A DNA stretch of 64,000 bases from Stegostoma tigrinum. Its lineage: Eukaryota. Within the stretch, counting starts at the first letter, position 1, and the number at the start of each line of letters is the position of its first letter. The notes beneath the pieces are model-generated. The model was given only the letters and a program-made list of their open reading frames with translations, was not told the origin of the DNA and ran no database searches. Shown piece by piece: positions 13,642 through 61,970 of the stretch. The DNA lies in NCBI RefSeq assembly GCF_030684315.1, contig NC_081387.1, positions 16,895,409 through 16,959,408 on the forward strand. The letters run 5' to 3'. Both the position numbers and the translations under genes were made by a program.

Positions 13642-13737
13642 TTTTCAGCCTTTTTCTGAGTGCATTCGATCTATACGGTGACGTACTCATTGTGTGTCTG
13701 CCGGGAATCCTGATAAAAGAAACACTCGTACGTTCTG
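13642..13737 (+). CDS. Gene A exon: TM4
   Basis: ttttgcctccag|TT ... G|GTGAGT; 96 nt, phase 1/1. VFSLFLSAFDLYGDVLIVCLPGILIKETLVRS, homologous to gene B GEIAVICLSASLI. Confidence 0.78.
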
Positions 13738-15715: not shown

Positions 15716-15864
15716 TCAAACACTAAACAAGATCACTGAGTGTATCTGTGTCAAAAAGCATATGTAACATCATAACTGTTCTCCAAGCATTCTGATGAGT
15801 TTGACGCCTATTATGCTGCTTCGAACTGCAATTTGTGTTTTCATATTTCTGTTATCAATTTCAG

Positions 15865-15965
15865 GCAAAGGATGTGAGCCAGCGCCCAGTCTGCAAACTA
15901 GTCTAATTCTTGCTCTGGTGGTGCCATTCATTTTCCTTTTGATATCCCTTTGCCTGGTATATTGT
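15865..15965 (+). CDS. Gene A exon: extracellular KGCEP loop plus TM5
   Basis: tttcag|GC; KGCEPAPSLQTSLILALVVPFIFLLISLCLVYC, a clear paralog of 52053-52154. Donor is TGT|GTAAGT (phase 0) or the alternative A|GTAAGG at 15969 (phase 1). Confidence 0.85.
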
Positions 15966-16912
15966 GTAAGTAAGGCTGATGGAGTTACAGGTTGTATCCA
16001 AATTATTGCAAATGATACAGTGACTGACTGACGAGGATTTTCTATTTCACTGACTCTGGAATAATGTGACAGTTGCCTCCAATAGGATGTTGGCCCTGAT
16101 ACAGCAATGCTTATAGTACCCCTCCTGACATAAGAGACTGGGTGTCGATGTTGTGATGCTGAAGAATCTAACAGATGTGTCCTACAGCTAACTATTATGC
16201 ACAAAAAAATTAGATTGCAGAACAGTGTTGAGTAGCCTCTGCTTCCCAAAGCGTGTCATGCTTCAAGTGATTCTGGGGTAAGATGGAGTATGAGACGTTT
16301 TCACCAAAAGCCATATGCTACAACACTGATTTCATGAACATGTCTCAAAGTTACACTGACCCGTGTACACTTGACACTGGTGAACACCAGGGCTACACAG
16401 CCAGCTATGCTATCCAACCATGACTTTTACCTGATATAAGAAAATACAATCTGGTAAATAGGAACAGGATTAGGCCTTTTGCCTTTTTTTGAGCCTGCTC
16501 TGTCATTCAATACGATCATGGCTGACCATCCAACTCAGTATCTTGTTCCCACTTTGTTGCTATACACTTTAATCTCTTTTGCCCTGAGAAATATATCTAA
16601 CACCTTCTTGAAGGTATTCGATATTTTACTCTAAACTGCTTCCCATGGCAAAGAATTTGGTCAGCTCACCACTGTCTGGGTGAAGACACTTCTTGTCTCA
16701 GCCCTCCATGGCCCACCCCACCTACTTAAGCTTAGAGATTTTAAACTGAGCAGCTCAAAATCACCAGAATGGTATAACCATCCAATTCCTTCACTATACT
16801 CCTCCGAATCTGGTGGCCAGGAAGACGGTCAGACTGCAGCATCTTGTCTCAAGCCAGTGTGCCCAGCATTGAGGTACTGGTCAGTCTAATCCATCTCCGC
16901 TTGCTGGACCAT

Positions 16913-19169: not shown

Positions 19170-19980
19170 ATCATGAAGATAAATAAGATAAAAGATAAAA
19201 GAATGACGAGAGTAAGATGAGGGCCAATCAAGGACAGTAGTGGGAAGTTGTGTGTGGAGTCAGAGGAGATAGGGGAAGCACTAATTGAATATTTTTTTGA
19301 CAGTATTCACTCTGGAAAACGACAATGTTGTCGAGGAGAATACTGAGATACAGGCTACTCGACTAGCGTTTTGTACAGTCACGGGATTTATAGGGATTGA
19401 CTTCCGGAGCCATGATGTCATGCTCCAACTGTACAAAATACTAGTGCAGCCTCATTTGGAATATTGCGTGCAGTTCTGGTCGCCCCATGACAGGAAGGAT
19501 GTTGAAGCATTGGAAAAGGTGCAGAGGAGATTTACCAGGATGCAGCCTGGTCTGGAGCACAGGCCCTATGAAGAAAGGCTGAGAGACTTGGGTCTGTTCT
19601 CGTTGGAGAAAAGGAGGCTAAGGGGGGATTTAAAAAAGACATATAAGATGATCAGAAAATTAGATATTGTGGACAGTGAGAGTCTTTTTCCGAGGATGAT
19701 GATTTCAGCTTGTACAAGGGGGCATAGCTACAAATTGAGGGGTGATAGATTTAAGACAGATGTCAGAGGCAGGTTCTTTACTCAGAGAGTGCTATGGGCG
19801 TGGAATGCCCCGCATGCCAAAGTAGTTAACTCAGCCACATTAGGGGCATTTCAACAGTCCTTGGATAAGCATATGGATAATGATGGGATTGTGTCAGGGG
19901 AGGGGCTTAGATTAGTTCACAGGTCGGCGCAACGTCGAGGGCCGAAGGGCCTGTTCTGTGCTGTATTGTTCTATGTTCTA
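19170..19980 (+). mobile_element. Young CR1 LINE, internally deleted (RT core missing)
   Basis: ORF 19285-20007 joins the linker (VFTLENDNVVEENTEIQATRL) to the C-terminus (MLQLYKILVQPHLEYCVQFWSP..TRGHSYKL..FFTQRV); tail ttctatgttcta. Confidence 0.9.
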
Positions 19981-20564
19981 AAAGCAGGATCAGGCTCAAA
20001 GGGATGAATGGTCTCATCCTCCTCCTATTTTCTATGTTCCCTTGGGTGCTAGGACGATAATCCCAGCCTGTTCCTTAGAATTCTATAGACATTCGGTTGC
20101 AACAAGTGACTCCCAGGACAAGATGGACAGGCCCTCGAAGCATCCTAAACAGATCAAGTGTCTGCACCCATCGCGGGGGATGGAGGGGACCCAGGCCCAC
20201 ATCTGGTGAAAGTGGAGAAGGCATGGAGAGTGTTGAAGTGCGTTGGAAACATGCAGAGGTGAAAGTGAGGGGTCCAAGTGAGTGCAAGACCCTCCCATGT
20301 GTCACGTCTGCCTCACTCTTGAGCCCTGGCCTGGGCCATGTCATGGACGAATCTGCAGACTGGACTTGTCAGTAACCACAACGTCCAGTGAATCGCGGTG
20401 GAAATTGCATCCCCCCCCAACCCCCCAGCCACCATACCGAGCGATCGCCCAAGAAGAAAGGGACATGGCAACGTGACAGTCATACAGCTCGCAAACAGAC
20501 CCTTTGGCCCAACCAGTCTGTGCTGACTATAATCCCAAACTAAATTAAACTAATCCCACCTGCC

Positions 20565-39189: not shown

Positions 39190-39990
39190 CATAGAACCCC
39201 TCAATGTTGTGCCGACCTGTCATACCGATCTCAAGCCCATCTAACCTACACTATTCCATGTACGTCCATATGCTTATCCAATGACGACTTAAATGTACCT
39301 AAAGTTGGCGAATCTACTACCGTTGCAGGCATTCCCTTACTACTCTGAGTAAAGAAACCACCTCTGACATCTGTCCTATATCTTTCACCCCTCAATTTAA
39401 AGCTATGCCCCCTCGTGCTCGCCATCACCATCCTAGGAAAAAGGCTCTCCCTCTCCACCCTATCTAACCCTCTGATTATTTTATATGTTTCAATTAAGTC
39501 ACCTCTCAACCTTCTTCTCTCTAATGAAAACAGCCTCAAGTCCCTCAGCCTTTCCTCGTAAGACCTTCTCTCCATACCAGGCAACATCCTAGTAAATCTC
39601 CTCTGCACCCTTTCCAATGTTTCCACGTCCTTCTTATAATGCGGTGACCAGAACTGTATGCAATACTCCAAGTGTGGCCACACCAGAGTTTTGTACAGCT
39701 GCAGCATAAACTCTTAGTTCCAGAACTCGATCCCTCTATTAATAAAAGCTAAATCACTGTATGCCTTCTTAACAGCCCTTAACAGGATCTGTTTACATGG
39801 ACACCGAGATCTCTCTGCTCATCTACACTGCTAAGAATCTTACCATTAGCCCTGTACTTTGCCTTCCGGTTACTCCTACCAACGTGTGTCACCTCACACT
39901 TGTCCGCATTAAACTCCATTTGCCACCTCTCAGCCCAGCTCTGCAGCTTATCTCTGTCTCTCTGCAACCTACAGCATCCTTTGTCACTAT
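39190..39990 (-). mobile_element. Young CR1 LINE 3' end
   Basis: ORFs 39246-39707 and 39779-40108 (LQSWAERWQMEFNADKCEV; MLQLYKTLVWPHLEYCIQFWSP). Confidence 0.92.
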
Positions 39991-40601: not shown

Positions 40602-40695
40602 ATGAGGATCCTCAATGAATACTTCTTGACAAAATGTGCCTTCAACTTACTTCAGCTGTTTATTCTACTGAGTTACTGCATCCAAATTACCAGTG
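40602..40695 (+). CDS. Gene B exon: signal peptide
   Basis: aaccATG (A at -3) ... G|GTGAGT, phase 1. MRILNEYFLTKCAFNLLQLFILLSYCIQITS-G has a hydrophobic core and small residues at the cleavage site; in frame with the V exon. Confidence 0.8.
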
Positions 40696-42424
40696 GTGAG
40701 TCCTGAATCTAAGCTAAAATAATTGTTTCCTCATTGTATGAGTTACTTAGAGTTCCATAATTCCATTACAAATATTGCTTTTTGTACTGAGATGGTGTGT
40801 TTCTACACAGCAAATTAAAATGTATGTTACAAATTAACTCTCAGAATATGGGTGCTAGGTTCAAGGCCAGATTGAGAGCCCATTCCTAATCGCTGCAGAG
40901 AAGGTGCAAATCAATTTCCTTCTTGAACCACTGCAAGTAGTTCACACAATGTTGCAAGGGAGGGAGTTCCTGGATTTTGAAGGAACAGCAATATATTTTC
41001 CAACTCAGGATTGTGATGGCTTGGAGGGGAACTTACAAGAGTTGGTGTTCCCATTTATCTGCCGTCCTTGTCCTTTTTTAGATGGAAGTTATTGTGGGTT
41101 TGGAAGCTACAGGCAAGGATGCCTGGTGTTAGTGCAGTGAACAGTGTCATTGTCATTGATACACCCAGCTGCGACTGAGCATTGGTGGTTAAAGGAGTGA
41201 ATATGAAAGATGGTGGATGAGGTGCCAATCAAGTGAGCTGCTTTGTCCAGGATGACATTGAGCTTCTTGTGTTTTGTTAGATTTGCACTCATTTGGAAAT
41301 GCACTTATGTGACTAAGTGGAGACTATTTAATCATACTCCTGAATTGTAACTGAAAATTGTATTGTTTTTAACATAGCTGACTATTTTTTTGGGAAATGT
41401 CTTCACACTTGCCTCAAACTGTGTGATAAGTATGTTGACATTTCTGCCAATACTGCTTCTGAGTGAGGTGTCTATCCTTGTGACTGAGTGATATCTTTCT
41501 GCAGGAGATGTGTCACTGTCACTCCCTGTCCAGCACACCTTGCTAGACATTGTGATTATGAGCACGCAAGACCATCCTCATGTACTTATGCCAGAGGTAG
41601 TAGCCAACTGAACCCTCCATGAGAGTCAGCACCTCCCAGCAGATATGCCCGATATGCGGCACAGGGTGGTTGGTAAGCAGTTTGTATTGGGGTGGGGCGG
41701 GTAGAGGTTTAACGGGGAACAGCTTTGGAATGGCACCATCAGGAAGCAAGGGGCTGTTTGACTGAAATCTGTAAACTGAGGAAAGACTAACTTTTTGGCA
41801 GAGTCCCACTGACAAAGTAACAGTCAACAGTCAGTGTAACAATGAGACAGTAGTCATTTTTGACAACAGAGCTAAAGATATTAAGGTGCACCTCTGTAAA
41901 TCACACAGGCTTTAGTTGGCATGTCGTATCCAGTTTAGGGCACCACACATCAGGAGGGATGTCTGGAACGTGGAGAGAGATGGAGCGAATGGTGCTAGGA
42001 TTGAGGGACTTCAGTTTTATGGAGAATCTGGAGGAACTGGCGATGTCATCTTTAGAGTAGAGAAAGTTAAGGAGAGATTTATTAGAGGCATTAAAAGGGT
42101 TTTGACATAGTTGATAAGACTCTGTTTCCACTGGGTTATTTGGCAAAAATGAATTGTCTGGGAGAAGCGGAGACATTTACTGCTGCAGTGAGTTGTCCCT
42201 TTGGGAATGCAGAAAGCACGGTAAAAGTAAATTCTGTTTAGAACAACTCCTGTGATGTACCTCTGTGTTAATCCACGTGAGGTCGTGTGTTAAAATGCAT
42301 CACTTATAGTGACAGCTGATGAGGCGCACAGACAGCGAGGTAGTAAACCAACTTCCCTAGAAAAGGAGGACAGCTTTTGGCTTGAGTGCTGGAGACAATG
42401 AGAGAATAGTTCACAGTTTCTTTC

Positions 42425-42710
42425 ATGTGAGATGTTAAACCAAGCCCCTGCCTGTATTGTCAGGTGAATGCCAAGGCCTCTGTGGACAGTATTTTGAAGA
42501 AACATGAAAGTTTTCCATGATCTCCTGACCAATAATAATCCCTGAACTAACATAGAGAAACAGCTTATCCAGTAATTATCAAGCTGCTGTTTTTGAGACC
42601 TTTCTTTATACAAGTTCCTCTGCTGTGTTTCCTACATATCAATAACGACTACACTTCAAAATATTTGTTCGTTTGCAAGTTGTGCTTAAATGCAAGCCTT
42701 TCCTATTTGT
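42425..42710 (+). mobile_element. DeuSINE (SacSINE1/AmnSINE1-like) remnant
   Basis: gatgttaaacc..tcaggtgaatg..tttcctacatatcaataacgactacacttcaaaa resembles the Deu domain. Further remnants near 40390-40520 and 45460-45830. Confidence 0.6.
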
Positions 42711-43186
42711 TCTCTTCAAATTTTGAGGTCTGTTCAGACCAGGATTAAACTTTGTGTAAATAAACTGAGTCAAATTTAAATAAAAGCTTTGGTGACTAAC
42801 CTCTGTTCTAATTCATGTGAGTGGGGGATCACGTGCTGCAGAAAACCACCAGTGAATTGTCTGTAATCTTCTGTCCACTAACAGTATTTGACAAATTGTT
42901 GGCTTCACTCCAGACCTTTTCTACTGCTTGTGAGGCACCTCCCTTTCAGTGATTCAACATCAGCAAAGTGTGCCCTAGGGATTTTCCACAGTGGCATTTG
43001 GAAATGGTGGAGAGTATACATGCTGTAATGTTGAAACAGGCCACAGTGACTTTGCACCATAGAGTTCAGTGGCTGTCTTATTGACAGTAAAAGGTGATTC
43101 ACAGGTCCAATCTCAGCACGTGAAACAGTGCCAAAATCTCACTACACTTTGTATGCAACAATCACTGTTTCTATTATTGCTCATAG

Positions 43187-43513
43187 GCAATGTCAAAATG
43201 GAATCTTACCGTGCTCCCGGAAGCTCTATGTTCTTCCCTGGAGTTGATGAGTATGAACGGAGCACAACAAAATTTTACCAATGGAAAGTGTCCAATGGGG
43301 GTACAAAGAATGGGCTCAGTGCGGGAGTGCTACTGTTTCACGTTGGGGCTGCAGAACCTTCAGTATTAAATAAGTACACACGTCGCCTTGAATTCTTCCC
43401 AACCAATGGATCGTTCATCCTTCATCATTTAACTTCTTCAGATGAGGGTCTTTATACACTTCCCATCAATCTACGTGATATCATCATTCAAAATGTTCAG
43501 CTATGGATAGTAG
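43187..43513 (+). CDS. Gene B exon: Cys-free IgV-like domain
   Basis: ctcatag|GC ... G|GTATGC; 327 nt, phase 1/1. ..YQWKV..YTRRLEFFPTNGSFILHHLTSSDEGLYTL..VQLWIV. Confidence 0.9.
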
Positions 43514-43584
43514 GTATGCTTGTTTCATGAATTTAAGCGGCAATGATCTGTGCTATGGGAAAATACATCAGATGTACCTACGTA

Positions 43585-44590
43585 ACCTGTCCCTTATTCT
43601 GAGACTGCATCCCCTGGTTGCAAACCTCAGACAGGAAACATCTTTCCTGCCTCCACTATAAGATGCCACTATATTGCCTTTAAGAATTTTAAGTTTCATT
43701 GTGATCGCCTCTCATTATTCTAAACTCCAGGGAAGTAAGGCCAGTCTCTTCCGTCTCTCCTCATAGACAATCCAGGTAGTCATTAAAAGAACCTTCACTG
43801 CCCAGGGCTGCAAAGGAAAGTACATCCTTCCTTAGTTATGTGGGGTCAGAACTGTGTACAACCCAGGCATGGTCTCACGAGGCACTATACAATTTTAGTT
43901 TACTCCTGTACACACAGCCTGTTGTGATGAAGGGCAACAATTCATTCACTTTCCTATACACTTGCTACAGCTTCATGTTAGCTTTCAGTGACTTGCTGGC
44001 AAGGATACCTGGTCTATTGAACATTAACACCGCTAAATGGCTCACTGTCTAGAAAATACTCTACACCTCTGTTCTTCCCACCAGTGGATGCACTCGAACG
44101 TATCCACTGCTTCATGCGGTCGGTTTAATGACTACGACATCACTGTAGCAAGTCAGAGTAAACATCAACAAAAACATTTGCCCATTTACTCAGCCTGTCC
44201 AACTCTCCTGAAATCTCTTTGTTTCCTCCTCACAACCCCTGTTTCCATCTGGTTTTATGTCATAAACTCTCTGCTAACTTTTTATGATTCACATACAGGG
44301 ACATGCAGATCTCTCAGTACTGCAGCTTTCTGCAGTCTTTCTCCATTTAAACAATTTCTGCTCTTCGTCTTCAATTCTTCCTGCCGAGGCGTACAGTCAT
44401 GTAATTGCCAATTTTTTTTGACAACTGACAACCTGTCTGTATCCATTTGCGGACTTTTTCTACCCTTTGCATTGTCAGCAAATTTGGCTGCAATACAGTT
44501 CACCCTTTCATCGAAGTCATTAATCCAGCTGGCGAGTAGTTGAGGCCCCAGAACTGAACACTGAGACAATCCACTCATTAGTTTGTCAAC
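43585..44590 (-). mobile_element. Degraded CR1 fragments
   Basis: SGLSQCSVLGPQL..INDFDERVNCIAAKFADNAK (RT core remnant). Confidence 0.75.
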
Positions 44591-45952
44591 CCTGAAACGC
44601 AAGCCACAGGAGGGGCATGGGTGGAGTGTGAAACTTATGTCAGACATCCTGCCAGCCCACCTACCTGCCCCTGCAGGTACTTTGGTGTTCAGGTACTTGC
44701 AGACTAATTTAGTTCTTAACTAACCAGTTAATGAGCTGTTCAGTGAACCTTTCACCAGCTTTCAATTCAGTGGATGATAAGGAGTATGGGAATGATACAT
44801 TTGCCCCCTGATCCTCCAATGGACAGGCAGATCTCTCTTGCACTTTCTTCCACCTCCATACTTGATGATTGTAGTAAAATTCCACCGTCCACTCTTGCAG
44901 GATACAAACCTGGGTTCCTAGAACATTACCGTGGTATCTGGATGGCTAGTCGCAATACCACTGGGCCACTACCTCCCCATTTTAATAAGTCACCCTGCTA
45001 TTGCTATCAATAAATGGATTCTGTTAATGTTAAAGGTGAAGAAGGAAGCTCACCATCACCTTCTCAAGGGCAACTAGGGACAGATAAATGTTGGCCCAGT
45101 CAGCGACATACACATTTGGCGAATGAAGAGAAAAAGCACTTTGGTTCTAGTAACTGCAGTGTGCATAAGGATAGTGCACTATCATCCTTTAGCTATGAGA
45201 GACAGTACATTTTGTGTGCCAGTCTGGAACTTTTGACAACACTAAATGAGACAACAGAAACCAACTTGTTAATTAATTTGGTCCTTCAAAACAGATTGGG
45301 TTAATGCTCTTGTTAAATTGACAAGTAAAAGCATTACTGGAAAACTAGATTAATCCAAAATAAAATGGAAAGTGCTGGACTGCTCACAAGGTCTGGCAGC
45401 ATCTGTGAAGACAGAAAAGTCTGATTTCAAGTAAAATCGGACTCTTGCAAGACTTAATGTAGCGACCCAGCTGCACATTGCTGAAGGAGTGCTGTATTAT
45501 CGAAGCAGTCTTTTTTTTTTGATGACACTCTTTAGAGCATGGCCCCAACTGCCAACTTCACTGGTTTGGGAGGAAACTAAGAATCTCCACTTTTGAGAGG
45601 AAACCATTAGGAAGAAATGTCCTGACTTGAAACGTCAACTTTCCTGCTGCTCTGATGCTGCCTGGCCCGCTGTGTTCCTCCAGCTCCACACTCTTGTCCC
45701 CAACTCCAGCAGTTCTTACAATCTCTGCTGTCCTGATGAATATTATTCTAAGTGCTGTAAAACTGCATCATCAGACCATTCGTTGCGTTTCTGACTTCGA
45801 TAAAATGACAGACAAATTCACCACTGTGTTCTTTACACAACTGTCCCTTAAAATAAATACATCTCCTTTCTTTTGAACACACATTTTGCGAGCATTGTGA
45901 AGGATGGGGTTAGGGTTAGTGCAATTATTTATTCAGTATTTCTCTCTTTCAG

Positions 45953-46213
45953 ATAAGCTGTCAAATTTTCTGATATTAAGCAGATGCAGCTTCCCCCAGC
46001 CTGCCATCATGCTGACCTGTAATGTTTCTGGACATCCTCATGAGTATCAATGGCTGAAAGATGGAGGGAACATCTCTCGCCGTCACCGACTAGTAGATGG
46101 AAACAGAAGCCTCATCATTCTGAATGATGGGAAAGATGACCGTGGCATGTATACTTGCATTGCAATCAATCCTGTCAGCTCTGTCCAAGCTCATTATCTG
46201 TTAACTATTAATG
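45953..46213 (+). CDS. Gene B exon: IgC2 domain
   Basis: tctctctttcag|AT ... G|GTAAGC; 261 nt. LTCNVSG..YQWLKDG..GNRSLII..DRGMYTCIAINPVS..LLTIN. Confidence 0.93.
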
Positions 46214-47109
46214 GTAAGCTGTGTTTTGCACATAATTTCAAGAATAGGAGCATGGTTAGGAGAAATTCCTTCACTCGGTGTTGTTGAGCCATTTTATCAC
46301 AAGGAATGTTTGAGACAGATCATGCTTGAATGGAGAGACAACTGGTTTTACAATGTTACAATTTCCAAGTGTTCCGTGCAATGTATATTGATTGCCCCAA
46401 ATCATGTTTTGCTACGGTTACTTGTTAGTACAGATTGTGCTCGTTATGGGGAAAAAAAATGCATGTTGCCAAAGTTTTTCAGCTTGCACTCATCAGGAGA
46501 AATGGAAGAATACCAAATAATATTTATTATGTGAGCAACAGGGTGCTGACCAGTTGGCAATTGTGTTCTGATGGCCAAGTCTTTAGGCATCAAGAATGGG
46601 CAAGAAACACTTTACCGAAGCTTTAAATTTAAATTTAATCAGGGTGAGTCAACTTAAATTCACCAATGTGTTTAGTAAATGTGTCTTCCAAGCTTTAGCT
46701 TAAATTAAAGGGTGTAGGGCCTGGACGAAGTGCCTTTTAGCTGCAGGGGACTCAGCCCTTCATGTGAATGTAAGGAGCCTCTCGTATGTATAAGTGAGTC
46801 ACTTTGCAAACTGATGATCTTCGGTTGGTTATTGAGTGATTCTTGGCAGCCTCTGAACATTTTACTAAGTGCTGCCCAAGTGTGGAGTCAGATCAAATTG
46901 GGAAACTATGTTCTACAATTTCTAAGTTTGGGCTTATTGAGCACTACCAGTACTCTGCCTGCCATGGACATTTGAAGGGTTGGCTGTTTAAAGTGGTTCT
47001 GATGTTTAGCCTACACACTTGGTGTCATGCCAGCACTGAACTTCATGGAATACGTTACTGAATCTGCATGGTTAGCAGAAGGTCTTTTTCAGGTTTGATC
47101 GCAGCATCC

Positions 47110-47505
47110 TATAAATTGAAGGTATTGGCTATGAGGAAAGATTGGACAAACTTGGTTTGTTTTTACTTGAATGTCGGAGGCTGATGGGTGACCTGATTAG
47201 AAGTTTACAAAACTACAAAAGGGATGGATAGAATGGATAGTTGGAGTCTTTTTCCCAGGGTAGCAATGTCAAATAATCTGTGGCATAGGCTTAAGGTAAA
47301 AGCGAGAAAGTTTAAAGGTACTGTAACAGGCAAGTATTTTACATAGAGGTTGGTAAGTGCCTGGAATGTACTGCTAGAGGAGTAGTAGAAGCAGATTCAA
47401 TAGGAGCATTTAACAGGCATCTGCATTGATGTATGAATGGGCAGGGAATCGAGGGATACAAAACACAGAAGCCAAAGGGCGTTCTTCAGTTTAGAAAGGT
47501 GTCTT
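47110..47505 (+). mobile_element. CR1 3' fragment
   Basis: YEERLDKLGLF..RRLMGDLI..YFYIEVGKCLE-type decayed C-terminus. Confidence 0.7.
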
Positions 47506-48187
47506 GTGTCGGGGCCGGGGGGGGGAAGAAGAAAACGGTTCATGTTCTCTGACTATTTCTGAGTCAAGCCATCAGTCAACTCCACTGCACTCAAATAAAA
47601 GAGTGGCAGTTGTTGGAGATCTGAAACGATGGACTCGCAACATTAACTCCATTTTCTCTCCAAAGATGCCACCCGACCTGCTGAGTTTCTCCAGCAATTT
47701 CTGTTTTTGTTTCACTTGCCCTCAGCCCTGACCGAAGACATTAATCTGAAAACTTAACGTTGCACATTTTCATGGTAGCAGAAGAGCATTGGGCGGCCAG
47801 CACAAACTGATATCGTACATGAGGAAATTGGACAGTCACAACATTTACCAGGAAAATCTCAGCGAAGTTCAGTGTCTTTCAGACAGACAACAAACTGTAG
47901 GAAACAGAGCACTGGTTATGTATGATATGCTTCTCGTCTTGCAGTTGAAACACATTGTTGATGCATAGCTGAGAATGTGTCACACTGCCTGTAAGTGTAT
48001 TGTAGCTCATCTTGAAAGAGTTAGTGTGGGGAGAGGGTGACAACCAAATATTGCATTGGATGCTAAGTGCAAAATGTCCTATTTCAAGCACTCCAGACTG
48101 TCTTGTGAACTGCATTTTTAAGGAAAAGCAGACACTTTGTGGAAGCTTTGAAAACGTGATAAGTTTAACGTAAGTTCTCTGTTTCAG

Positions 48188-48295
48188 ATTTGTCACAAAT
48201 TCGTGACTGCACACTGGGATTGTCCATATCTTCGCTGGTCACTGCTGCTTCTGCCTTTATCTGCACAATAATTTCATGCTACAAGGCTGAAAGAT
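48188..48295 (+). CDS. Gene B exon: TM1
   Basis: ctgtttcag|AT ... T|GTAAGA; 108 nt. DLSQIRDCTLGLSISSLVTAASAFICTIISCYKAER. Confidence 0.85.
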
Positions 48296-48487
48296 GTAAG
48301 AGCAAACTATTTCTAGAGTTTGGTGTCAAAAATTTAAAAATATCATACGTTAACAATGGAAGCAATGTTAAACAAGTAAGTATTGCCCTTGTTATTTTAA
48401 ATTCAGTTCCATTGTATGGAGTGACTGATTTGAATGTGCATATTATTTTCTTAAGTAATATTGATTTGAATGTACTTATTACTCTAG

Positions 48488-48571
48488 ATCTCCAGTTTCT
48501 TAAATATGGATTAGAAATCTTGGCATTGGTCCTTCTTACTGCAGTGCTTGTGTATTGGATTGTAATTGGAG
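48488..48571 (+). CDS. Gene B exon: TM2
   Basis: ttactctag|AT ... G|GTACTG; 84 nt, phase 1/1. YLQFLKYGLEILALVLLTAVLVYWIVIG. Confidence 0.78.
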
Positions 48572-48977
48572 GTACTGTACTCCTGTTTCTTTGCCCTTAC
48601 ACTGTATTGTAGAAATACAATTATCTGCCAAATTAAATTCAAGTTTAAAATTTGAGGACAGGCATTTTTTCAAAATCGTCTGTTTTATAATAAAAGCCCA
48701 ATTTGTTCACCTGATTTTGGAAGTGTCCAATTGATCCTTCAGCATGCTTTCAAAGACCTTTTAAAGTCAGCTGTAATTAAGTTCCTGATGCAATAATCCC
48801 ATCCTGAAAGCCCAAATATTAAGCCTCCTGCATTCCCCTCAATGTGATCGTAAAAGCCCCGTTCAGTATATATTGGGCATTCTTTTATATACTGAGATGG
48901 TGAATTAACCAGTGAAGGTATTTGCTCTTTATTCCATGAATGTGTGTAATTGTATTTGGTTTTTGTCTATTCAATAG

Positions 48978-49097
48978 AAGTTGCAACAATCATAGTGATT
49001 GTGTTGGTGGTCCTGTGTCTGCTGCTAATCCCAACTGTGTTATTGACATTGATGGCTTGTGATGTGATAAGTTCCACGGAGACCTCGAAGATCAAAA
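48978..49097 (+). CDS. Gene B exon: TM3 plus cytoplasmic loop
   Basis: ttcaatag|AA ... A|GTAAGT; 120 nt. EVATIIVIVLVVLCLLLIPTVLLTLMACDVISSTETSKIK. Confidence 0.85.
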
Positions 49098-49831
49098 GTA
49101 AGTTCACCTGTACTTTATGGACTTACATTGTGCTGCCAAAAGGCTCATGATCAGATACAGGGATGGTGAGAATGTGCTTCTCCTTGGGGTGCATATTGAG
49201 CGAGTGATCGGGAAATTTGTTTGAGGGAGTGATTTGAAATTTAGATTTGTCGCATTTCTGGTGAATTTTAAGAATTGGTCGGAGGAAATTGCAGCAGGTT
49301 GGTTAGTATCCAACTATAGTGGATCCAGTTGTAGATCCCAAGGAGATACACCGTCCTTGCTGTCAGTGAATCTGTTGAAGGATGGAGCAGGCTCAAGGGG
49401 CTGAATGGCCTACTCCTATTTCTCATGGTCTGGTATAACTCTTCCTCTGGTCTGAGGAAGTGATACCCAACTCAAAATGTTGTCTCTGGTTCTCTCTCCA
49501 CAGGTGCTGCCAGACCAGCATTTTTTTTGTGATTGTTTTGGATTTCTACCTTTTTATAGGAAGATGCAAACAGCCTCCACTTTTTAATCTGTTAATTTTT
49601 AAGTGGATAAAGTATTCAGCAGATTGTAAAGATGTGTGCTTTTCCCTTCCCAACCTGTGTTTTCATTTGATCCAATAATCCCGAGCACAGGATTAGGAAA
49701 AGTTGCTCTGTACTTCTCTTTTTGACCAGTTGCGCTCGCCAGATGCGCGGCAAGAGACAAACAGATCAGCATTCGAGTTCATCTGTGACAGCTAAGTATG
49801 TAATCAGCAATTCCGATCTATTTATTGCCAG

Positions 49832-49930
49832 CTTACGTTTTGATGGTCGTGGGTGTGCTATCTACGTCGGGTGAAATTGCTGTGATATGTCTGTCTGCAT
49901 CCTTGATTGCAGGGATAACCTATCCAGGTG
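49832..49930 (+). CDS. Gene B exon: TM4
   Basis: ttattgccag|CT ... G|GTGAGT; 99 nt. TYVLMVVGVLSTSGEIAVICLSASLIAGITYPG. Not in the ORF track; found by homology to gene A. Confidence 0.8.
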
Positions 49931-50756
49931 GTGAGTTGGAAATGCGTAAAATGGATAGCTAACACATCTGTTCTGAACGTAACATCCCGTCAGCAATTAT
50001 GTGATTCGGCGACGTAATTGCTGAGTTGTTTCAGCCCGTTCCCAATGAATACTGTTCATAGCCTCCTTTTACACTGGAAAGATGAGACAATGAGGTCCAC
50101 TGTGTATGCACTACCTCTTTACTCGACCATTACAAATTTAGCCACACTGTTCTGCAGTCTCCTCCTAGCCCTGTATTACTTCCCAATATTTATCCAGTTT
50201 TCTCCTCTTAAATCCAACGGTTCCCATTGCAACTACTCTCTATATAGTGAAATGTTCTGTATGTGAACAGATATCTCTTCCAAACTAAATCTTAATGAAC
50301 TCAGTTGTATAATTAAGCTCTAAAACTGTCGAATCTAAGAGCTACATAAAAATACACAGCAGAGAAAAAGACCACTTGGCCTAACCAGTCTCCATCAACA
50401 TTAATGATCTACTCAAACATTCTCTTCTTCCTTTCCTGCTTAACTCCTCAAACATAACCTAACATTTTCATTTCTCTTTTTCAAATGCTACCTCGTTAAA
50501 ATTGAATTGTACTAATTCTTTCCTGCAAGTATATGACAAGATAGCATGTTCTACATTCTCTCCTCTTGTTGGAAATGATGTCTTATGAATTCCTTTGTCA
50601 AATTTTGATAATGCTTTAAAAGCCATTGAGTCTATTGTCAGTGTTTTCATTTCAAGAGAGGCAGGGACTACAATTCTGGAGTCTCTAAACTAAATTCAGA
50701 GGAGACCCAGGACTTCTCATTTCAACTCCTGCAGCCTCTTGTGTGGATCAATTAGT

Positions 50757-51815
50757 GTAACCAGGAAAATTAGGATCAGCAGTGTAGAATACTTTTAAGT
50801 ATGAAGGTCCTTTTCGAGAGCTGGTGTTTTAACCAGGAGGAAAGCACAATGCTCTGTTGATTCTGGGCCACTCTGGTTAGTTCCATGGGGGAGCAAGTTG
50901 GCATTTCAGCCTTCCTAGTTCATGTTGGAAAGGGAATCGAATGGAGAAAACTATTTTTATCCAAAAGTGAAAACAACTGAATATTTGTTATTTATTTCTA
51001 TACAATCAGTGATCCAAGTGAATTTGTTTCCAACAGAATTAATTATTTTCTGTTTTAGCATCAGGTTTGTTACAAAGTTGGGTAGAGTATTCATGAACTG
51101 GAAAGCAGGAAGTTGGAATGATTGGTTTAAAAGTATTGTAGTGTTGGTAAAGAGTGCCTGGTTCCTTTAACAAAAAAAATCACGCTTTGTCTACACTTGG
51201 AAGTTGCACACACTATACAGAAAACCTTAAGTGAAAATTACATTAAAAAAGCAGTCTTGTTGTCAAAACATGTTTTGAATTTGGCCAGTTAATTTAAAAC
51301 AAGCATTCAGTGATTCAAAGCCAATTGAACTTAATAACTGGCGGTGGTGACAACATTGACCCAATTCGACTGAAGAAATACTGTTGTCATCACGGGTATA
51401 CAGATGAGGGCATTTGGAAAATCGAACAAGAGCCACCTGCGGTCTGCAGCAAAAGCAAGTCAGCTATCTGAGACATAAACCTGGTTTTCACAAATAATTT
51501 TAAACTCCTCTTTAAAAAGCCACTTCAAAGGTCCCAATGAATTTTGGGACTTTTGTTTATTTGAACAGTATTCAAGTAGAATTTAGACCAGTTGGGAGTT
51601 GTTAGTAGTCTGGGGGGGAAATTGTCAGCTTATTAGTAATTGTGTTAATTTGTTCATTGTTAGGGTTAAATAAATAAATTGTTTCTTCTTACTTGTAAAG
51701 TGGAGATCAGGGATTTTCTTTCTTTTAATCGATTCCGATGGGCAAGGTAGCTTCTCTGGGGTTTTTTTTTGGAAGGTAATTATTAGAAGGGAACCTGTAC
51801 TCCGATCATAATAGA
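50757..51815 (+). mobile_element. Possible solo LTR
   Basis: Starts tgtaacc, ends ..gatcataata, with an internal aataaa near 51670. No second copy or TSD verified. Confidence 0.25.
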
Positions 51816-52052
51816 TTGCTGCTTGTGTTTTGATTTAGTTATTAGAGGGGTTCAGCCATTTCCCCATTGTAACAGGTTAATGATGCATGTTGTATGTGCT
51901 TTGGGCAATGAATGCTGTTCCTGTAAAGGATGATGATTTCAGCATTTCCATTCAAATGTTTCAAATGATTTGTGTTCTGTATAAAGCCAAACAAAATATC
52001 TTGCATCAAATTCTAACCATCTTTTCTGTTTTTTTGCAATCATATATTGCAG

Positions 52053-52154
52053 ACAAAGGATGTGAACCAGCAGCCAACCTACAATCAAACTTGACTGTTG
52101 CTTCTTGTGTGTCAATTGCTTTCCTATTGGCACTTCTTATCTTTCACGCTATAC
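52053..52154 (+). CDS. Gene B exon: KGCEP loop plus TM5
   Basis: attgcag|AC ... C|GTAAGT; 102 nt. DKGCEPAANLQSNLTVASCVSIAFLLALLIFHAI. Confidence 0.87.
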
Positions 52155-52339
52155 GTAAGTTGATGCGGGTTGTATCAAAAAATTTTCCACTTCCCTCACT
52201 CTCTACCACCACTGAAAGTCTATGTGGGAACCTTTTTTTTTGTATGTTTAGCCCATGACTATCCAGCCACTAACTTTTTGACTGAGTCAACAGAAGCAGT
52301 GGGCTGGGAATGTGAAATTCCACTTAAATCGTGAAAATA

Positions 52340-52910
52340 AAAGAAATGCAGATGCTGGAAATCTGAAACAGAAATTGCTGGGAAAGCTCAACCGGTCTGG
52401 CTGCATCTGTGGATACAAAAGTGTTAACGTTTCAAGTCCAGTGACCCTTCTGCCGAACTGATAGTAGCTGGAAAAAAGTTGGTGTTTGCTGAAGACAGGG
52501 GCATGAGGTGGCTAAAGGATTGAGTGCACAGACAGAGATGGAGCCCAGACACCCAGGGAGAGGAAGGGATGGATGATAAAAAGCCAGAGAGAAAGAAAAG
52601 CTGACAATGAGGACTGTAAGTGGGTGCGTTCAGATTCTAAAGTTGTTGAATCGGCTTTCTGCCTGGTGCACTACCATCCAACCCTCCATCTGCCTGACCA
52701 TTGTTCCCTGTCTGTCTGGGCTCCACGACTACCTATCCACTCACTCCTTTTCTCTCTGCCCCCCCCCCCACCACCGCGTGCATTCAGCGTATAGAGCACT
52801 CCGTCCTCGCTAACATCCATGCTGAGGAAAAGTCACCAAAACTCTGCTGTCTCTCCACCGATGCCGTCAGACATGTTGGGTTTCTCCAGCAATTTGTTTA
52901 TTTTTTCTGA
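52340..52910. mobile_element. Inverted PLE terminal-repeat pair (second family)
   Basis: gatgctggaaatctgaaac..ctggctgcatctgtgg and the reciprocal ..gatgccgtcagac..ttctccagcaatt. Confidence 0.7.
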
Positions 52911-53514
52911 CTCTTACTACCTGGTTAATGTCAGGAGTGTTGGAGTGTGGAAGGTTGGCACATTGGCACTGTGATAGACCCTGGAGTAATATAACTGGGT
53001 ATGGATAGACTGGACAAATGTCAGTTCAGTATCTGCATCAGAGTCCCATGTAAGTGGTCCCATAATCCTTTGTGATCAGGAGACTTCATTCTCGTGAACA
53101 GTGTCTGGTTAATGATGTTTGACTTGGGATTTAGGACGATGAAATCTATTGTCTGAAGTGAATCTGGCTGGATCATTGCAACCTCTGAGGCCTTCTCTCC
53201 ACTGCTGAAACTGTCAGCACCTCAGAGCCCTGGAATTCAGAAAGAAGATTAGTTAATGCAAAAGTGATAACGTAAGGGACATCTTCATAGTTTGAACGTG
53301 CAGTGGCAGGTCATTTCGCCACAGAGACGTTCTTGGTCTAGTTACATACATAAGCAAGAAAGAAATACCCATCTTTTATTTCTTTTTCTCTTGCCAAACT
53401 TGTTGCTTTGCTTTTGTTTGCACATTTCTGTTTGCCAATTATGACACTGCCAGGCCACCCAAGGCTGATGGATAATGTCATCGGGTTTTGAAATGATGGC
53501 GCGAGATTTAACAG

Positions 53515-53558
53515 ATTTCTGCAAAGCTTCTTTGCTTTTTCAGCTGAAGAATTGTGAA
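53515..53558 (+). CDS. Gene B candidate tail mini-exon
   Basis: tttaacag|AT ... GAA|GTGAGT; 44 nt, phase 1 to 0. HFCKASLLFQLKNCE. A stronger competing acceptor at 53543 would give PEEL-stop. Confidence 0.4.
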
Positions 53559-55273
53559 GTGAGTGGAGAGTAATTTCATGCAGCCTGTTAATCTGAAGGT
53601 AGTATGAAGGCTAAAGTTCAACTTGTTTTGAGAAAGATTTTGTTTATTGAAATTCTTTGCTAATTTCACTAAATCACTCTTACTTCCATCATCAACAGTT
53701 GTGAATCGGAATGAAAGGAGATCTAGAAATCGATCTGAAAATGCCAGTGCAAACAACATCGATAAACATGAGCAAGTTGTAAGTATGGGTAATGGAAACA
53801 AGTGACAGTTTAGAGATAGAGCTGTTGCTGTAAATCTTTCCGTAAGTGAGCTTTCGTGATGACTTCACAGCTCATCATAATCAGAAATGGGAATGTTGTT
53901 TTATTTTGCTGCTGTGCCGGAGTAATTTTCAGGGAGAATGCAGAATGTTCTATGAATAGTGGAGCACATGGGTAAGTATGTCCAGGATGAAAACACAAAA
54001 AAAAATGCTGAAAATCACAACGGGGTCAGGCAGCATCCACAGAGAGAACACGCTAATGTTTTGAGTCAAGATGACTCTTCTTCAGAGCATACATTGTGTT
54101 GACTTCTAGCAGTGATGTTTCACCCACACGTGAAGGGGATTCTTTTGCCTCTGTTGTGTTCAGACCACCAATTAATGGGCAATGAAAAAAAAACTTTCCT
54201 CGTTGACAGCATGTACAAGATCGAATTAATGTTGGAACATTGGAAATGCAATAGGCCCTTTATCCTGACCAGCCTGCTCTGCTGTTTACTACAGTTGTGG
54301 ATGATAAGACACTCAGTGCCTTTTACTGAACCCCATCCCATAATGCTGCATACCATAATCTATCAACCCATCTCTACCTTTTTACACATTATTTAACACG
54401 TGAGCTACTGTGGTGGAGAATTCCCAAGATTTGCGACCCTCTGAGTAAAAAGATTTCTCGTCCTGTTCATTGTAAATGGTTTCCCCTTTTTACTTTTAAA
54501 TTATACCCCCGCCCCCGCCCCGAGGCCTAGGCTCCTCAGCCTCGAGTAACCTCTTAACTGCACCTCCCTGACAATCCCTTAAGTATTTTGCAGGTTTCAA
54601 TGAGATCCCCTTCTAATTCTGTGACAGTCCAGAAACTACAGCTCAGTTTGTCCAATCCATCTTCATAGGACAGCTCCACTGTGAACCTTTGCTATGTCCT
54701 GTGAATGGCAACAATATCCTTCCTCTAGTGTAGACCTAGACTGCACACAGCACTCTGCATGTCGTTATACAACTGAAGCAAGACATTACCACTTCCTGAT
54801 AACACATGGCTGCAGCAAACTAACCTTCTGTCACAATAGACAGGGAAAGGCTGTTTTCCCCTTGAGAGACAGTTGTGATAAAAGGAGGGTTATTGTTTAA
54901 AAACAAGCGCTGGCTCATTAAAGAGAGATGAGGAAAAATGAAATCCACTGTGAGGTTTGAGGAAATGCTGTCCTTTAAAACGCTGGTGGACAGAGGAGTG
55001 GGGGAGGTTGGACACTTAATGGGGAAAGTTAATAGAGCAGGAAAATGGAAACTATTGTCATGACACTGGGCCTTAGAGTCACAGATGTGGATTGGAAGAC
55101 TCTGGACAAGGGAGAACAGGATTGGAAGAAATAGGCCTAGCATGTTTCTGCCCACGAGGAGAGGTTCAGTTTCTTGGGGCAGTCAAACTGAAATCAATGG
55201 CTAACATCTTTAATGTGTCTTTTTTATGTCTCTTTGTTTCTTCCCCCCCCCCCCCCCCCCCGCCCCGCTGTAG

Positions 55274-55363
55274 GTGCTAAATGAAGAATCATGTAAATTC
55301 ACTAGCACTGATCTGGGTGAAGAGATGCTTCAAACTGAGAGCACTGTTCTCAAAGAAGAATAG
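55274..55363 (+). CDS. Gene B candidate terminal coding exon
   Basis: Very long pyrimidine tract with poly-C, then tgtag|GTG. VLNEESCKFTSTDLGEEMLQTESTVLKEE-stop in phase 0. Confidence 0.5.
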   Translation: MLNEESCKFTSTDLGEEMLQTESTVLKEE

Positions 55364-56149
55364 CCTTAAGTAGTAAAACACCATTCCCAGTGGCCAACTG
55401 CCTCCTGTCCAGAAGCACGGTTTGTGGAACTCTGCCTTTCAATTCAGAGTTTCAACTTGTGCAGATGACGTTTCCACTCACAAGGCAAATGTTACTGAAA
55501 TCATGCCTGGGGTCCCTCACTGTCAGTGGCTCTTCAGAAAGCAACAGGTGCCTTGGAATTTGTATCCATTTCCCCTCAGTTCGACCTCAATTCCTGCCCA
55601 GAATTTTTCAATATCAAAAGAAATAGGAACAGGAGGAGGCCATTCAGCCCACTTTGCCCTTCAGTAAGACTGTGGCTGCTCTGGATGTGAACTTAACTCT
55701 ACTTTCTGGCTTGTCTCCCCATACAGTTCCCCCACCGTATAATAACCCTTGCGAACTCAACTGTCTACCTCAACCCAGATTGTGTTCTATGACCTGGACT
55801 CCAGTCCTCTGGAAGAAAATTCTGAAGTCTGATGTTACTCTGAGGAGGAAAACAATCTCCTTGTCTGTCTTAACGTGAAGCCCTCACTGTTTCAAACACA
55901 CTCCCTAGCTCTAGATTTCCCCAAAGAGGTTAACTTTAGTTTAGCATCTATCATGGTATCATCCCTCAGTGTCATATGGGAATATGATACATTTTTTTTC
56001 CATGAGAATACGTATCTTTTTTGAGACTCTATTGGGTAATGGCCTACAGTACTCAATCTTTTATTCATAAGGTAACTGTTCCAAATTAACTCTAACTTTC
56101 CATTTCAGAAAGAAAAATGTACACTATGCTAGGCCGAGATCCCCTACTC

Positions 56150-56730
56150 AGACCATTGCTTCACATTTCTCCACTTCCCATCCACGGCCCTCCACAACAC
56201 TTGCCCCTACTGCCTTTCCCTCCTTGCCTCCACCTTGCACCCCTTTCTCCCTTCATCCCCTCTGCTCACTCCCCTTCAACCCCTCACCTCTCCCAGTCCC
56301 CTCCCTCCTCACCCTCCACATTCCATCTTAGCTCTCATCTTCTCTGCCCCTCCCCCAGCCTCCAAAGACACCATCCACCCTTCCCACCCCCTCCTTCCTC
56401 ACCATCTCCACCCCCTGCATCCCCAGCCTACCCTCTTAGCTCTCCACCATCCACCCCTCGCTCTCCTCCATCCATCATCCCTTCTTTTTTCTTTTCTTAC
56501 ACCTCCCCTTATATCCTCCTCCTCATCACCCCTCCCATCCGCCTCTGCCCTCTCACATGTACCCATTGCCTCCTCAGCCCCCTCAACTCTGCCAGCCTCT
56601 CCTCCCACCCCCGATCTCACCAGTCCCCATCTTCTCCCCTCAGCTCCTTCACGCTCTCTTTGTCTTCTCCCCATCACCCCATCCACCTCACACCCCCCCC
56701 ACCTCATCCTTGCCCAACTCCCAACACATC
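56150..56730. repeat. C/T-rich low-complexity tract
   Basis: About 580 nt strongly depleted of G on the + strand. Confidence 0.9.
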
Positions 56731-58089
56731 CTGAGGAAGCTCTGCCATGACAGGGTTTTTGTTTCAAGTCTATGGGTGTGAGGCTAAAAAGGCACAGCAG
56801 GTCAGAGTGCATTCGAGGATCAGGAAAGTCAACATTTGGCGAAAACCCATCGTCAGACCTGCTCCTCGGATGCTATCTGACCTGCTGTGCTTTTCCAGCC
56901 TCACACTTGTAGACTCTGCCTTCCAGGATCTGCAGTCCTTATTCTCGCCTCCTGTCTCTTTTGGTTCCTGAAGCTTTATCTTCCTTTTGCCAGGGAAGCC
57001 TTAGTGCAATTTATATAACTTTTTAAAAAAGATTAATATGTAACACTTTACAACTTTTTGTGTATGTCTGAATTTTTAAAATGGTGCTTTATGTGAATTA
57101 TTTGCTTTGCATATTTTTATGGCTAACACCAGCAAGCCAATACTTACTCGCCGCATTTGATTATGCTGAGGTTTTCTTGTGTCATCCATTCATTTCATTT
57201 TATTGTCATTCATTCCCTTGCTGTCGTTGGTCCTGCTGAAACTAACGTTGAACATTCCTAGTTGCTCTTGTGATGATAATATTGAACGGAGTTCCTAAAC
57301 CACTGAAGTCTGCCTTGGGATGGTTCCTCCCACAGCCATGTGAAAGTTAAATAAAATGTAGGAAATCAGTTAGCTCTGCAAAAGGAGAGCATTTCTGTCT
57401 GTGCTACCCTTTTTTAATTGGACCAAATGGAACAGAAAACAAAATTGTAACAGTGTCCCACTTATTAGGATGTCAGGTACATGAGCTGAATATTACTGTT
57501 AAGATAATGCACTGATCTTGTTCATCTGGCAAAAATGAGCTAGTTAAAGGAGAGGACAGAAGCTTTTGAGAACGGACAGGGCAATTAAATTCTCCTACAC
57601 TGTTGCATTTTAACTTTTTTATATACATTTTCTGTACATGTATTTTGACATTGAGACTTTGGGAGAATTTTATAAGGGCTATTTTATCATAAATATGGGT
57701 TTCCTAAACTCCGAAAGCCACTGAACTTTGAACTGTGACACATTTGAATCTGGAACCAAATTGTCAGGTACAGCTATAAAATATAACCATTTCTAAACTG
57801 TTTGTAAATACTACTGCCTGTATTTATTGCATTTAATAAACCAAAGACCGACAATGATTGGAAGTCTTGTGATAACTCACCTGAGATTGGGCAATGTTCC
57901 GATATTGTTGCATGCAGGGAAATGTAAATGGATTTGACACTGCCATTATCATGAAACAATGCATCTGCTAGTTTGAATGAATGGTCATTCATGAAGGTGG
58001 TTGGTGTGGAACAATAGTCTCAGAATCGTGCAGTGAATCAAGGGCAATTCAAGCACCTGACTGGACATTGGGGAGTGAACCTTTAATTA

Positions 58090-60789: not shown

Positions 60790-61970
60790 TCTCTTCCAGG
60801 TCATAATATGGGATAAGATAAATTTACAGTTGGAGAAAAATAAGTAAATACTAGACAGTCAACACGGCTTTGTCAAGCACAAGTTGTGTCTAATGAGGTG
60901 ACACAGGCAGTGGATGAAGCTAGTGTTGTGGAAAGTAATTTAAATGATGCCACATAGAAATGTTTGGGATTGATGGGTCCTTGGCAGTATGGATTTGATA
61001 TTGGCCAAAAGATTGGAAACAGGCGTTAGGTATCAAACAGCTGAAAGTGATGTTCCTCCAAGATCGAAGTTGGGACCCTTGCTTTTCCTGATTTATAGAA
61101 ATGATTTGGAGACTGGAGTTGAGGGCAAAGACTCAAACTTTGCAGATGATACTAAGTTAGGGAGCGTAGTGAATTGTGAAGATGATGCTGAGTGACTTCA
61201 GGGAGACATTGACAAGTTGGCCAAATGGGCAGACCCCTGGCATATGAATTTAAATACAAGGAAATGTGACATAATGCATTTAAGGTAGAAAAATACCTTG
61301 GAGCACAAGTACATAATTCTCTGATGGTAGGCAGGCAAGTTGGAACAGATGTTAAGAAGGATCATAGGATCCTTGGATTTATAAATTGAGGCATGGAGTA
61401 TAAAAGCAAAGAAGTGATGCTACACTTCTAGAATTGGTGAGACTGCATTTGGAATATTGTGGTCAGTTCTGGGTGCCATATTTAAGGAAGGATGCTAAAG
61501 CCTTGGAGGAAGCATAAAGGAGATTCACTAGGAAGATACAAGGAATGAGGTATTTTCGATGCAAGGAAGGAAGGATTCGAGAATTTGAGCTTTTTCTCCT
61601 TGGATCAGAGAGGATTAAAGATGATCTTACTGAAGTATTCAAAATTGTGACAATATTGACAGGAAAAAGAAGGATATTCTGTTTCCACTATTTAGTGCTA
61701 ACTAGGGGTCATAATTTCACGGTTGTCAGTACAAGAGCTATGAGTGAGATAAGCAGAGGCTTCATCACTCAGAGAATTGTTAGAATTTGGAATGCACTGT
61801 CTGGAAGAGTGGTGGAGGCAGGTTCCATTGGAGTTTGCAAAGGAAACCTGGATATATATTTGAAAGTGATTAGCTATGGCGATAGGGCTGGACAATGTGA
61901 CTAGCTGAGACCTGGTACACACGTAATGGGCCAAATGGTCTCCTACACTACTGTAAAATTCTATGATTCA
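60790..61970 (+). mobile_element. Degraded CR1 LINE (RT to 3' tail)
   Basis: DVPPRSKLGPLLFLIYRNDLE..FADDTKLG; TRGHNF..ITQRIVRIWNAL; tail ttctatgattc. Confidence 0.88.

Follow-up and report, generated by a model that had tools for sequence, protein, structure and literature searches.

Does the zebra shark encode a receptor in which a V-type immunoglobulin (Ig) domain and a C2-type one stand on a membrane domain with five passes? The question is raised by a locus at 40602–55363 on the + strand of a 64,000-nt stretch of Stegostoma tigrinum DNA (the window, in which all positions below are given). First-pass annotation of the gene studied here (gene B) had proposed such a receptor, with a CD2/SLAM/CEACAM-type ectodomain. 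Gene B is probably intact, and we read its product as a type I five-pass membrane glycoprotein of 454 amino acids (aa), with a role in cell-cell recognition or adhesion, belonging to an ancient and undescribed family of the Ig superfamily.

Exon structure and coding status of gene B

Gene B consists of ten exons with canonical splice sites, and a stop count along the exon chain of 1365 nt (454 codons) finds only the terminal stop. Exons 1–8 have AG acceptors preceded by pyrimidine tracts, GT donors near the consensus (four are gtaagt or gtgagt) and phase 1 at every junction. All eight phase-1 GT-AG exons of the first-pass annotation are present, but its product of about 442 aa is corrected to ten exons and 454 aa, as two tail exons were added by comparison with the whale-shark orthologue. 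The latter, LOC125486895 (P0020/P0084), was reached from a phmmer search with the IgV exon. P0084 aligns to exons 1, 3, 4, 5, 7, 8 and 10 at 81–94% identity and to exon 9 in part (8 of 13 residues), and its blocks over exons 3–8 are separated by one residue each, corresponding to the split codon.

Exon 1 (40602–40695, donor gtgagt) holds the start codon and the signal peptide in 31 codons plus 1 nt, with 29 of 31 residues identical to the P0084 N-terminus. Exon 2 (43187–43513, phase 1-1, donor gtatgc) encodes a V-like domain of 108 residues without any cysteine. Its Pfam V-set match is weak, and the best PDB sequence matches are JAML and CEACAM N domains, the CEACAM N domains reaching only E 0.075–0.8. 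A phmmer search against 1.84e9 representatives gave 80 matches, the best being P0001 at 88% identity, while P0005, P0006, P0010 and P0096 are 43–54% identical. Exon 3 (45953–46213, phase 1, donor gtaagc) encodes a C2 domain with the motifs QWLKDGG, DDRGMYTC and NPVSS. It is identical to P0084 at 72 of 86 residues and to P0096, P0006 and P0005 at 57–68%, and it matches Pfam Ig_3 (6.8e-12) and I-set (1.2e-10), with CEA as the top PDB sequence match (8.7e-22). The exon translations and the Ig_3 match bear out the earlier description of a Cys-free IgV and an IgC2 with W-x-KDG, D-x-G-x-YTC and NPVS motifs. N-glycosylation sequons are present in both exons. In a Foldseek search with full-length models of relatives the top match is CEACAM1, and by these models the ectodomain is of a fold class resembling that of CD58, CD2, CD48, 2B4 and CEACAM1. 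For a homodimer of the IgV exon product, complex prediction scored 0.25 (mark 0.32), which speaks neither for nor against homophilic binding.

The next five exons encode one hydrophobic segment each, with 19-residue Kyte-Doolittle peaks of 1.87, 2.65, 3.46, 2.16 and 2.51 for exons 4–8. Exon 4 (48188–48295, donor gtaaga) carries a juxtamembrane linker with a cysteine (IRDCTLGLS), helix 1 and a KAER stop-transfer sequence; 30 of 35 residues are identical to P0084, and a tandem paralogue upstream (gene A, see below) matches it at 8656–8730. Exon 5 (48488–48571, donor gtactg; 21 of 26 identical to P0084) encodes helix 2, ending in WIVIG, and matches a gene A exon at 8963–9040 that is annotated in zebra-shark protein P0133. 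Helix 3 and cytoplasmic loop 2 are encoded by exon 6 (48978–49097, donor gtaagt), which shares 16 of 26 residues with helix 3 of horn-shark P0098, is close to helix 3 of bamboo-shark P0157 and has a paralogue match at 10903–10968. Exon 7 (49832–49930, donor gtgagt) encodes helix 4 (SGEIAVICLS); it is identical to P0084 at 28 of 31 residues, P0157 shows 61% identity over 49837–49935, and the gene A counterpart lies at 13642–13737. Exon 8 (52053–52154, donor gtaagt) encodes extracellular loop 2 (ECL2) with a near-invariant cysteine (DKGCEPAANLQS) and then helix 5; it shares 30 of 33 residues with P0084 and has a paralogue match at 15867–15941 (E 1.5e-5). The cytoplasmic tail follows in exon 9 (53699–53778, 80 nt, phase 1 to 0, donor gtaagt), which is Arg-rich and was placed via the P0084 tail (..KHEQV), and in exon 10 (55274–55363), which encodes an acidic, Tyr-free C-terminus identical to that of P0084 at 24 of 28 residues and ends with a TAG stop at 55361–55363.

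Open windows between AG and GT are abundant in any 15 kb, and the hydrophobic exons might be chance open frames in AT-rich intron DNA, stitched together by the reader. Within the 9.2 kb after exon 3 (46213–55400), however, there are 8 open hydrophobic phase-1 AG..GT candidates, compared with 1.4 ± 1.1 (maximum 4) in 100 Markov simulations and 1.2–2.1 per 9.2 kb elsewhere in the window. Five of the 8 are homologous to membrane exons of relatives. Indeed, homologues of all five membrane exons occur among the exons of the paralogue and the orthologue and among those of more than 50 relatives; chance is already refuted by this homology, and we give it practically no credence. Because they are conserved in the tandem paralogue, the whale-shark orthologue (apart from helix 3) and the horn- and bamboo-shark relatives, exons 4–8 are, on grounds of homology, genuine coding exons. 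The five hydrophobic segments, one per exon, of the first-pass annotation are supported by hydropathy, paralogue, orthologue and family alike.

No stop interrupts the frame of exons 4 and 5 across intron 4 (48296–48487, +, 192 nt), so that a continuous open reading frame runs over 48190–48612; retention of this intron would add 64 residues to cytoplasmic loop 1 without a stop.

Relatives of gene B

Gene A (683–15974, +) lies upstream of gene B on the same strand and comprises a V1-type IgV, a C2 and five membrane exons, which makes it a control for the architecture within the window itself. When the exon translations of gene B were compared with the window by tblastn, collinear gene A matches appeared at ∼845 (V), 5659 (C2, E 4e-11), 8671 (helix 1), 10903 (helix 3) and 15867 (helix 5, E 1.5e-5, KGCEPA). 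Helices 2 (8963–9040) and 4 (13642–13737) were found as phase-1 hydrophobic exons with motifs matching those of gene B. Gene A matches P0133 at 100%, and this RefSeq protein, named "vascular endothelial growth factor receptor 2-like", contains exactly the five helices of gene A. Judged by this layout, the VEGFR2-like name is wrong and the protein is a member of the V1-C2-five-helix family. The helix-3/helix-4 junction of gene A (..NNSA/VFSL..) is identical in its whale-shark orthologue, P0136, so that an insertion at this exon end, if there was one, would be older than the divergence of the two species.

Exons 4–8 of gene B align in order to residues 221–242, 258–282, 286–313, 329–350 and 359–388 of horn-shark P0098, and they are collinear with P0084 and P0157 as well. 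The gap that P0084 leaves at exon 6 is filled by helix 3 of P0098 (16 of 26 residues) and of P0157, and P0157 runs closely parallel to gene B throughout its membrane domain and tail. A profile search with 28 members retrieved 64 proteins at E<=1e-20 from at least 15 species of sharks, rays, skates and sawfish, with several per species. With a hidden Markov model built from elasmobranch membrane domains only, the caecilian proteins P0052 and P0091 score 29 bits over model positions 12–187, while shuffled controls score no more than 6 bits. Spotted gar P0100 and axolotl P0059 have the V-C2-five-helix layout and the loop cysteine, and are probable members by this layout, although their membrane domains score only 6–11 bits. 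By sequence comparison, gene B belongs to a family with a V-C2 ectodomain and five transmembrane (TM) segments (V-C2-5TM) that occurs in sharks, rays and at least caecilians, and the family is at least as old as the split between sharks and tetrapods.

Two types of V domain occur: V1, as in gene A and P0098, and V2, as in gene B and P0096. They are found singly or combined (V1-V2-C2-5TM in P0004 and P0005), and the V exons have therefore been shuffled within the cluster. Gene B pairs a V2-type ectodomain with a membrane domain of the "KGCEP" type. V1 and V2 could bind each other as receptor and ligand, in the manner of CD2 and CD58.

In RefSeq, members of the family are named "uncharacterized", "HEPACAM family member 2-like", "CEACAM1-like", "VEGFR2-like", "CD48 antigen-like", "CD276 homolog", "hemicentin-1-like" or "contactin-6-like", and dozens of these entries are misleadingly named (VEGFR2-like, HEPACAM2-like, CD276 homolog). 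The relatives of gene B, searched for exon by exon, are predicted proteins that are misnamed or uncharacterized. The new receptor architecture of the first-pass annotation holds, but not as a one-off, since a large family is already present in RefSeq as predictions whose names are uninformative or wrong. In the full-text literature searched, most subscription journals being outside its coverage, no description of a five-pass family with an Ig V-C2 ectodomain was found. What is added here is the reach of the family into tetrapods, the co-variation of its cysteines, the V shuffling, the exon-skipped forms and the absence of gene B from the zebra-shark protein set.

Every membrane exon is in phase 1-1, so exon skipping stays in frame, and the main product might not be five-pass; the C2 could, for example, be joined to exon 8 in a single-pass protein, with the five-helix form a minor one. 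Such joints exist in RefSeq models: P0001, P0164 and P0165 join the C2 directly to the exon with the ECL2 cysteine and helix 5, and single helix exons are missing from other isoforms (helix 1 from P0129, helix 2 from P0099 and P0124, helix 3 from P0084). In every species, however, most family models retain all five helices (59 near-complete matches), and the five exons are conserved between paralogues and across species, which argues for their use. If an odd number of helices were removed, the conserved ECL2 cysteine and the Arg-rich tail would also be misplaced, each on the wrong side of the membrane. A predominantly skipped product is thus quite unlikely, and the five-pass form remains preferred. 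The exon-skipped RefSeq forms, including P0014 without a C2, may be alternative topologies or annotation noise.

Topology, cysteines and a possible role

Positive charges follow helix 1 (KAER), helix 3 (KIK) and helix 5 (RNERRSRNR) of gene B. The extracellular loops are short: helices 2 and 3 are linked by one Glu, and helices 4 and 5 by TYPGDKGCEPAANLQSN. As the charges obey the positive-inside rule, we infer that the ectodomain and both short loops are outside and the C-terminus inside. The signal peptide, five TM segments and internal C-terminus expected by the first-pass annotation are supported by these charges and by homology, and the number of predicted helices is five by hydropathy. 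The translations of exons 9 and 10 contain no tyrosine. Signalling through immunoreceptor tyrosine-based inhibitory, switch or activation motifs (ITIM, ITSM, ITAM) is therefore excluded.

The cysteine of ECL2 is in one of only three invariant columns in a 19-sequence alignment (A1), and is invariant also in alignments of 27 and 28 sequences (A2, A3). In the wider family, counts were made over 59 proteins with a near-complete match to the membrane domain; 51 have the ECL2 cysteine. An unusual cysteine in the E-F turn of the C2 (DCGxYTC) is present in 41 of the 59. In standard Ig topology this turn lies on the side towards the membrane. The E-F cysteine is never found without that of ECL2 (39 versus 0, two gapped partial sequences set aside), an association with a Fisher p of 5e-4 across sequences that are non-independent. 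After clustering at 70% identity (36 clusters), clusters with and without the ECL2 cysteine number 29 versus 0 where the E-F cysteine is present and 7 versus 3 where it is not. Both cysteines have been lost in three lineages (P0137; P0134/P0143/P0166; P0141/P0142). As the ECL2 cysteine is near-invariant and co-varies with a cysteine at the foot of the C2, the pattern suggests a CD47-style disulfide between the Ig part and ECL2 in most family members.

Gene B itself departs from the pattern. Its C2 reads DDRGMYTC, with Arg at the E-F-turn position where most relatives have Cys. Absence of the E-F cysteine together with presence of one in the linker before helix 1 is seen in gene B and its whale-shark orthologue, in Chiloscyllium P0149 and, with the cysteine further upstream, in Mobula P0083. 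In gene B the predicted partner of the ECL2 cysteine is most likely the linker cysteine just before helix 1.

Several observations weigh against an intact five-pass gene with such a bond. Seven of the 36 clusters have all three cysteines, and 6 have that of ECL2 without an obvious partner. In the whale-shark models, exon 6 with helix 3 is missing, as are the distal two thirds of the IgV. The sequencing runs found for the locus are genomic only (4 runs, with evenly covered introns and no exon-exon joints). Gene B has no zebra-shark entry in a database of 5.8 billion proteins, whereas gene A, LOC125446596, LOC125446599 and LOC125446600 are present. From the missing entry, the truncated whale-shark models, the lack of an RNA run among those found and the loss from the C2 of the usual E-F cysteine, it could be argued that gene B is a duplicate that has fallen silent or is decaying, in a cluster with fast turnover, open by chance of youth and no longer expressed as a five-pass protein. 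We regard this as unlikely, given ten open exons with good splice sites and a single terminal stop, and protein identities of 81–94% to the whale shark in the shared exons apart from the partly aligned exon 9. The loss of the E-F cysteine is moreover accompanied by a linker cysteine, as in P0149 and, further upstream, P0083. Genomic contigs of the four runs, which come from one study and at most two samples, reproduce exons 4–8 unchanged, and there is no exon variant; the sole variants, at 50337 and 51618, are both intronic.

For the intact gene that we prefer, a mechanism can be proposed. A V domain without a disulfide would stand on the C2 outside the cell and probably offer the binding face. 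The V-C2 pair would be carried by a five-helix bundle in which each helix has its own phase-1 exon, and which probably carries an extracellular staple, a disulfide of the ECL2 cysteine. In most relatives the partner would be the E-F-turn cysteine of the C2; in gene B, where Arg replaces it, the staple would have moved to the linker. The short tail, Arg-rich near the membrane and then acidic, would provide no tyrosine-based signalling. Such a recognition or adhesion molecule might be a displayed ligand, or might signal by associating laterally via its helix bundle, in the way CD47 does with integrins. A tandem multigene cluster with shuffled V domains would fit an immune-type recognition role.

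CD47, other Ig receptors and further features of the window

According to its structure paper, CD47 is alone among immune receptors in having 5 TM segments, and its fold resembles that of no other protein (PMC8410850). A disulfide joins its central ECL2 residue, C245, to C15 of the Ig domain, and both ligand binding and signalling depend on that bond (PMC8410850, PMC10902115). Exons 3–7 of CD47 are the constant exons of the membrane domain (PMC10902115, PMC8410850). Together with the CD47-like proteins of poxviruses, CD47, the integrin-associated protein and "don't-eat-me" marker, is the closest known system to gene B. In both, an Ig ectodomain is placed directly on a five-helix bundle with its N-terminus outside and C-terminus inside, each of the five helices has its own exon, the tail is short, multi-exon and without Tyr signalling motifs, and ECL2 has a conserved cysteine, which in CD47 is bonded to the Ig domain (C15-C245). 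CD47 is a single gene for a single IgV with a canonical disulfide, whereas gene B belongs to a multigene tandem family and has a disulfide-less V on a C2. The gene B IgV has no equivalent of Cys15, and its ECL2 cysteine probably pairs with the linker cysteine rather than with the Ig domain.

The Pfam model of the CD47 membrane region (PF04549) gives no match at E<=10 in single exons or in 24 full-length members (19 plus 5 that include gar and caecilian), single membrane exons being too short as queries for Pfam to be informative. AlphaFold2 models show two Ig domains and five long helices for horn-shark P0098 (predicted local distance difference test, pLDDT, 76), and one Ig domain and five helices for the manta isoform P0014, which is without a C2 (pLDDT 71). 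Foldseek (PDB, BFVD) and VIA-align were run with two full-length models. Full-length CD47 is not among the top 50 PDB matches for the V+5TM model P0014, with Ig domains occupying all 50 places and the membrane domain effectively masked. The structural comparison of the TM region with CD47 (7MYZ) suggested by the first-pass annotation thus found no CD47, but in Foldseek and VIA-align lists saturated by Ig domains. With the membrane parts of P0098 and P0157 alone, no CD47 cluster is among the 30 nearest structures of each in the ESM Atlas. The Atlas gave the cluster of the family itself, with 110 chordate members, or helical bundles of a generic kind. Among the latter, those of cytochrome b561, NrfD and ferric reductase (Atlas TM scores 0.5–0.7) were not read as homologues, as there is no conserved His pattern.

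It is very improbable that gene B is the shark orthologue of CD47 itself, or one of an expanded set of orthologues. The five helices behind an Ig domain, one exon per helix, the ECL2 cysteine and the short multi-exon tail would all suit orthology, and the Mobula isoform P0014, without a C2, has the exact layout of CD47. They are outweighed by the lack of a PF04549 match in the full-length members and single exons searched, by the V without a disulfide or a Cys15 equivalent, by the extra C2 and the multigene family, and by the absence of CD47 from the 30 nearest Atlas structures of the two membrane domains and from the top 50 PDB matches of the V+5TM model. The missing sequence signal to CD47 is nevertheless weak evidence against common descent, because the membrane domains of gar and axolotl are already at the detection limit within the family. 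A more distant kinship is a tentative idea, possible though doubtful: the family would be the sister or parent lineage of CD47, with a five-helix module, each helix on its own exon, and an Ig-to-ECL2 disulfide joined to a CD2/SLAM-type V-C2 in the jawed-vertebrate ancestor, and CD47 would be the branch that lost the C2, much as exon skipping removes it from the manta isoform P0014, and then survived in amniotes. If this were true, the "unique" fold of CD47 would gain an origin, tied to the CD2/SLAM/CEACAM superfamily.

In its ectodomain gene B resembles three groups of Ig receptors. Members of the CD2/SLAM group (CD2, CD58, CD48, 2B4/CD244 and NTB-A/SLAMF6) have a V without the canonical disulfide followed by a C2, in a similar fold. 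They are single-pass or glycosylphosphatidylinositol (GPI)-anchored, and SLAM receptors signal via ITSM tyrosines; gene B, in contrast, has five membrane exons and a tail without Tyr, and so no ITSM (TxYxxV/I). CEACAMs likewise combine a disulfide-less V-set N domain with C2-set domains that follow it, and several family members carry the NCBI name 'CEACAM-like'. They are single-pass (with ITIM or ITAM) or GPI-anchored, and we know of no multi-pass CEACAM, whereas gene B is predicted to be multi-pass. HEPACAM and HEPACAM2 also have a V + C2 ectodomain, but are single-pass with a long cytoplasmic tail, in contrast to the predicted five passes and short tail of gene B, and the NCBI name comes from automatic Ig-domain similarity only.

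Gene B belongs to a second, multigene family of Ig-plus-five-helix proteins beside CD47, apparently with the same trick of a disulfide between ectodomain and ECL2. Should this family and CD47 be related, the origin of CD47 could be put to the test; otherwise the same design has evolved twice, which bears on why an Ig domain would need a five-helix platform.

The window also contains C-terminal fragments of reverse transcriptases of the long interspersed nuclear element (LINE) type, at 19285–20007 (+), 39246–39707 (-), 47130–47343 (+) and 61545–61904 (+), with motifs such as LEYC..FWSP and YEERL..LGLFSLE.RRLRGDL. One of these fragments, which we take to be CR1-like elements, is inside intron 3 of gene B. 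Intronic repeats at 47560–47759, 49360–49559 and 51560–51759 are of very high copy number, with a summed contig depth of 4e3 to 1e5 compared with ∼10–25 elsewhere. A short element translating as ..SSDAAWPAVFIQLHTL.. is present more than 10 times in the window. Just downstream of gene B, at 56117–56812, both strands have long Pro/Ser-rich open frames of low complexity, which are probably non-coding simple-sequence DNA.

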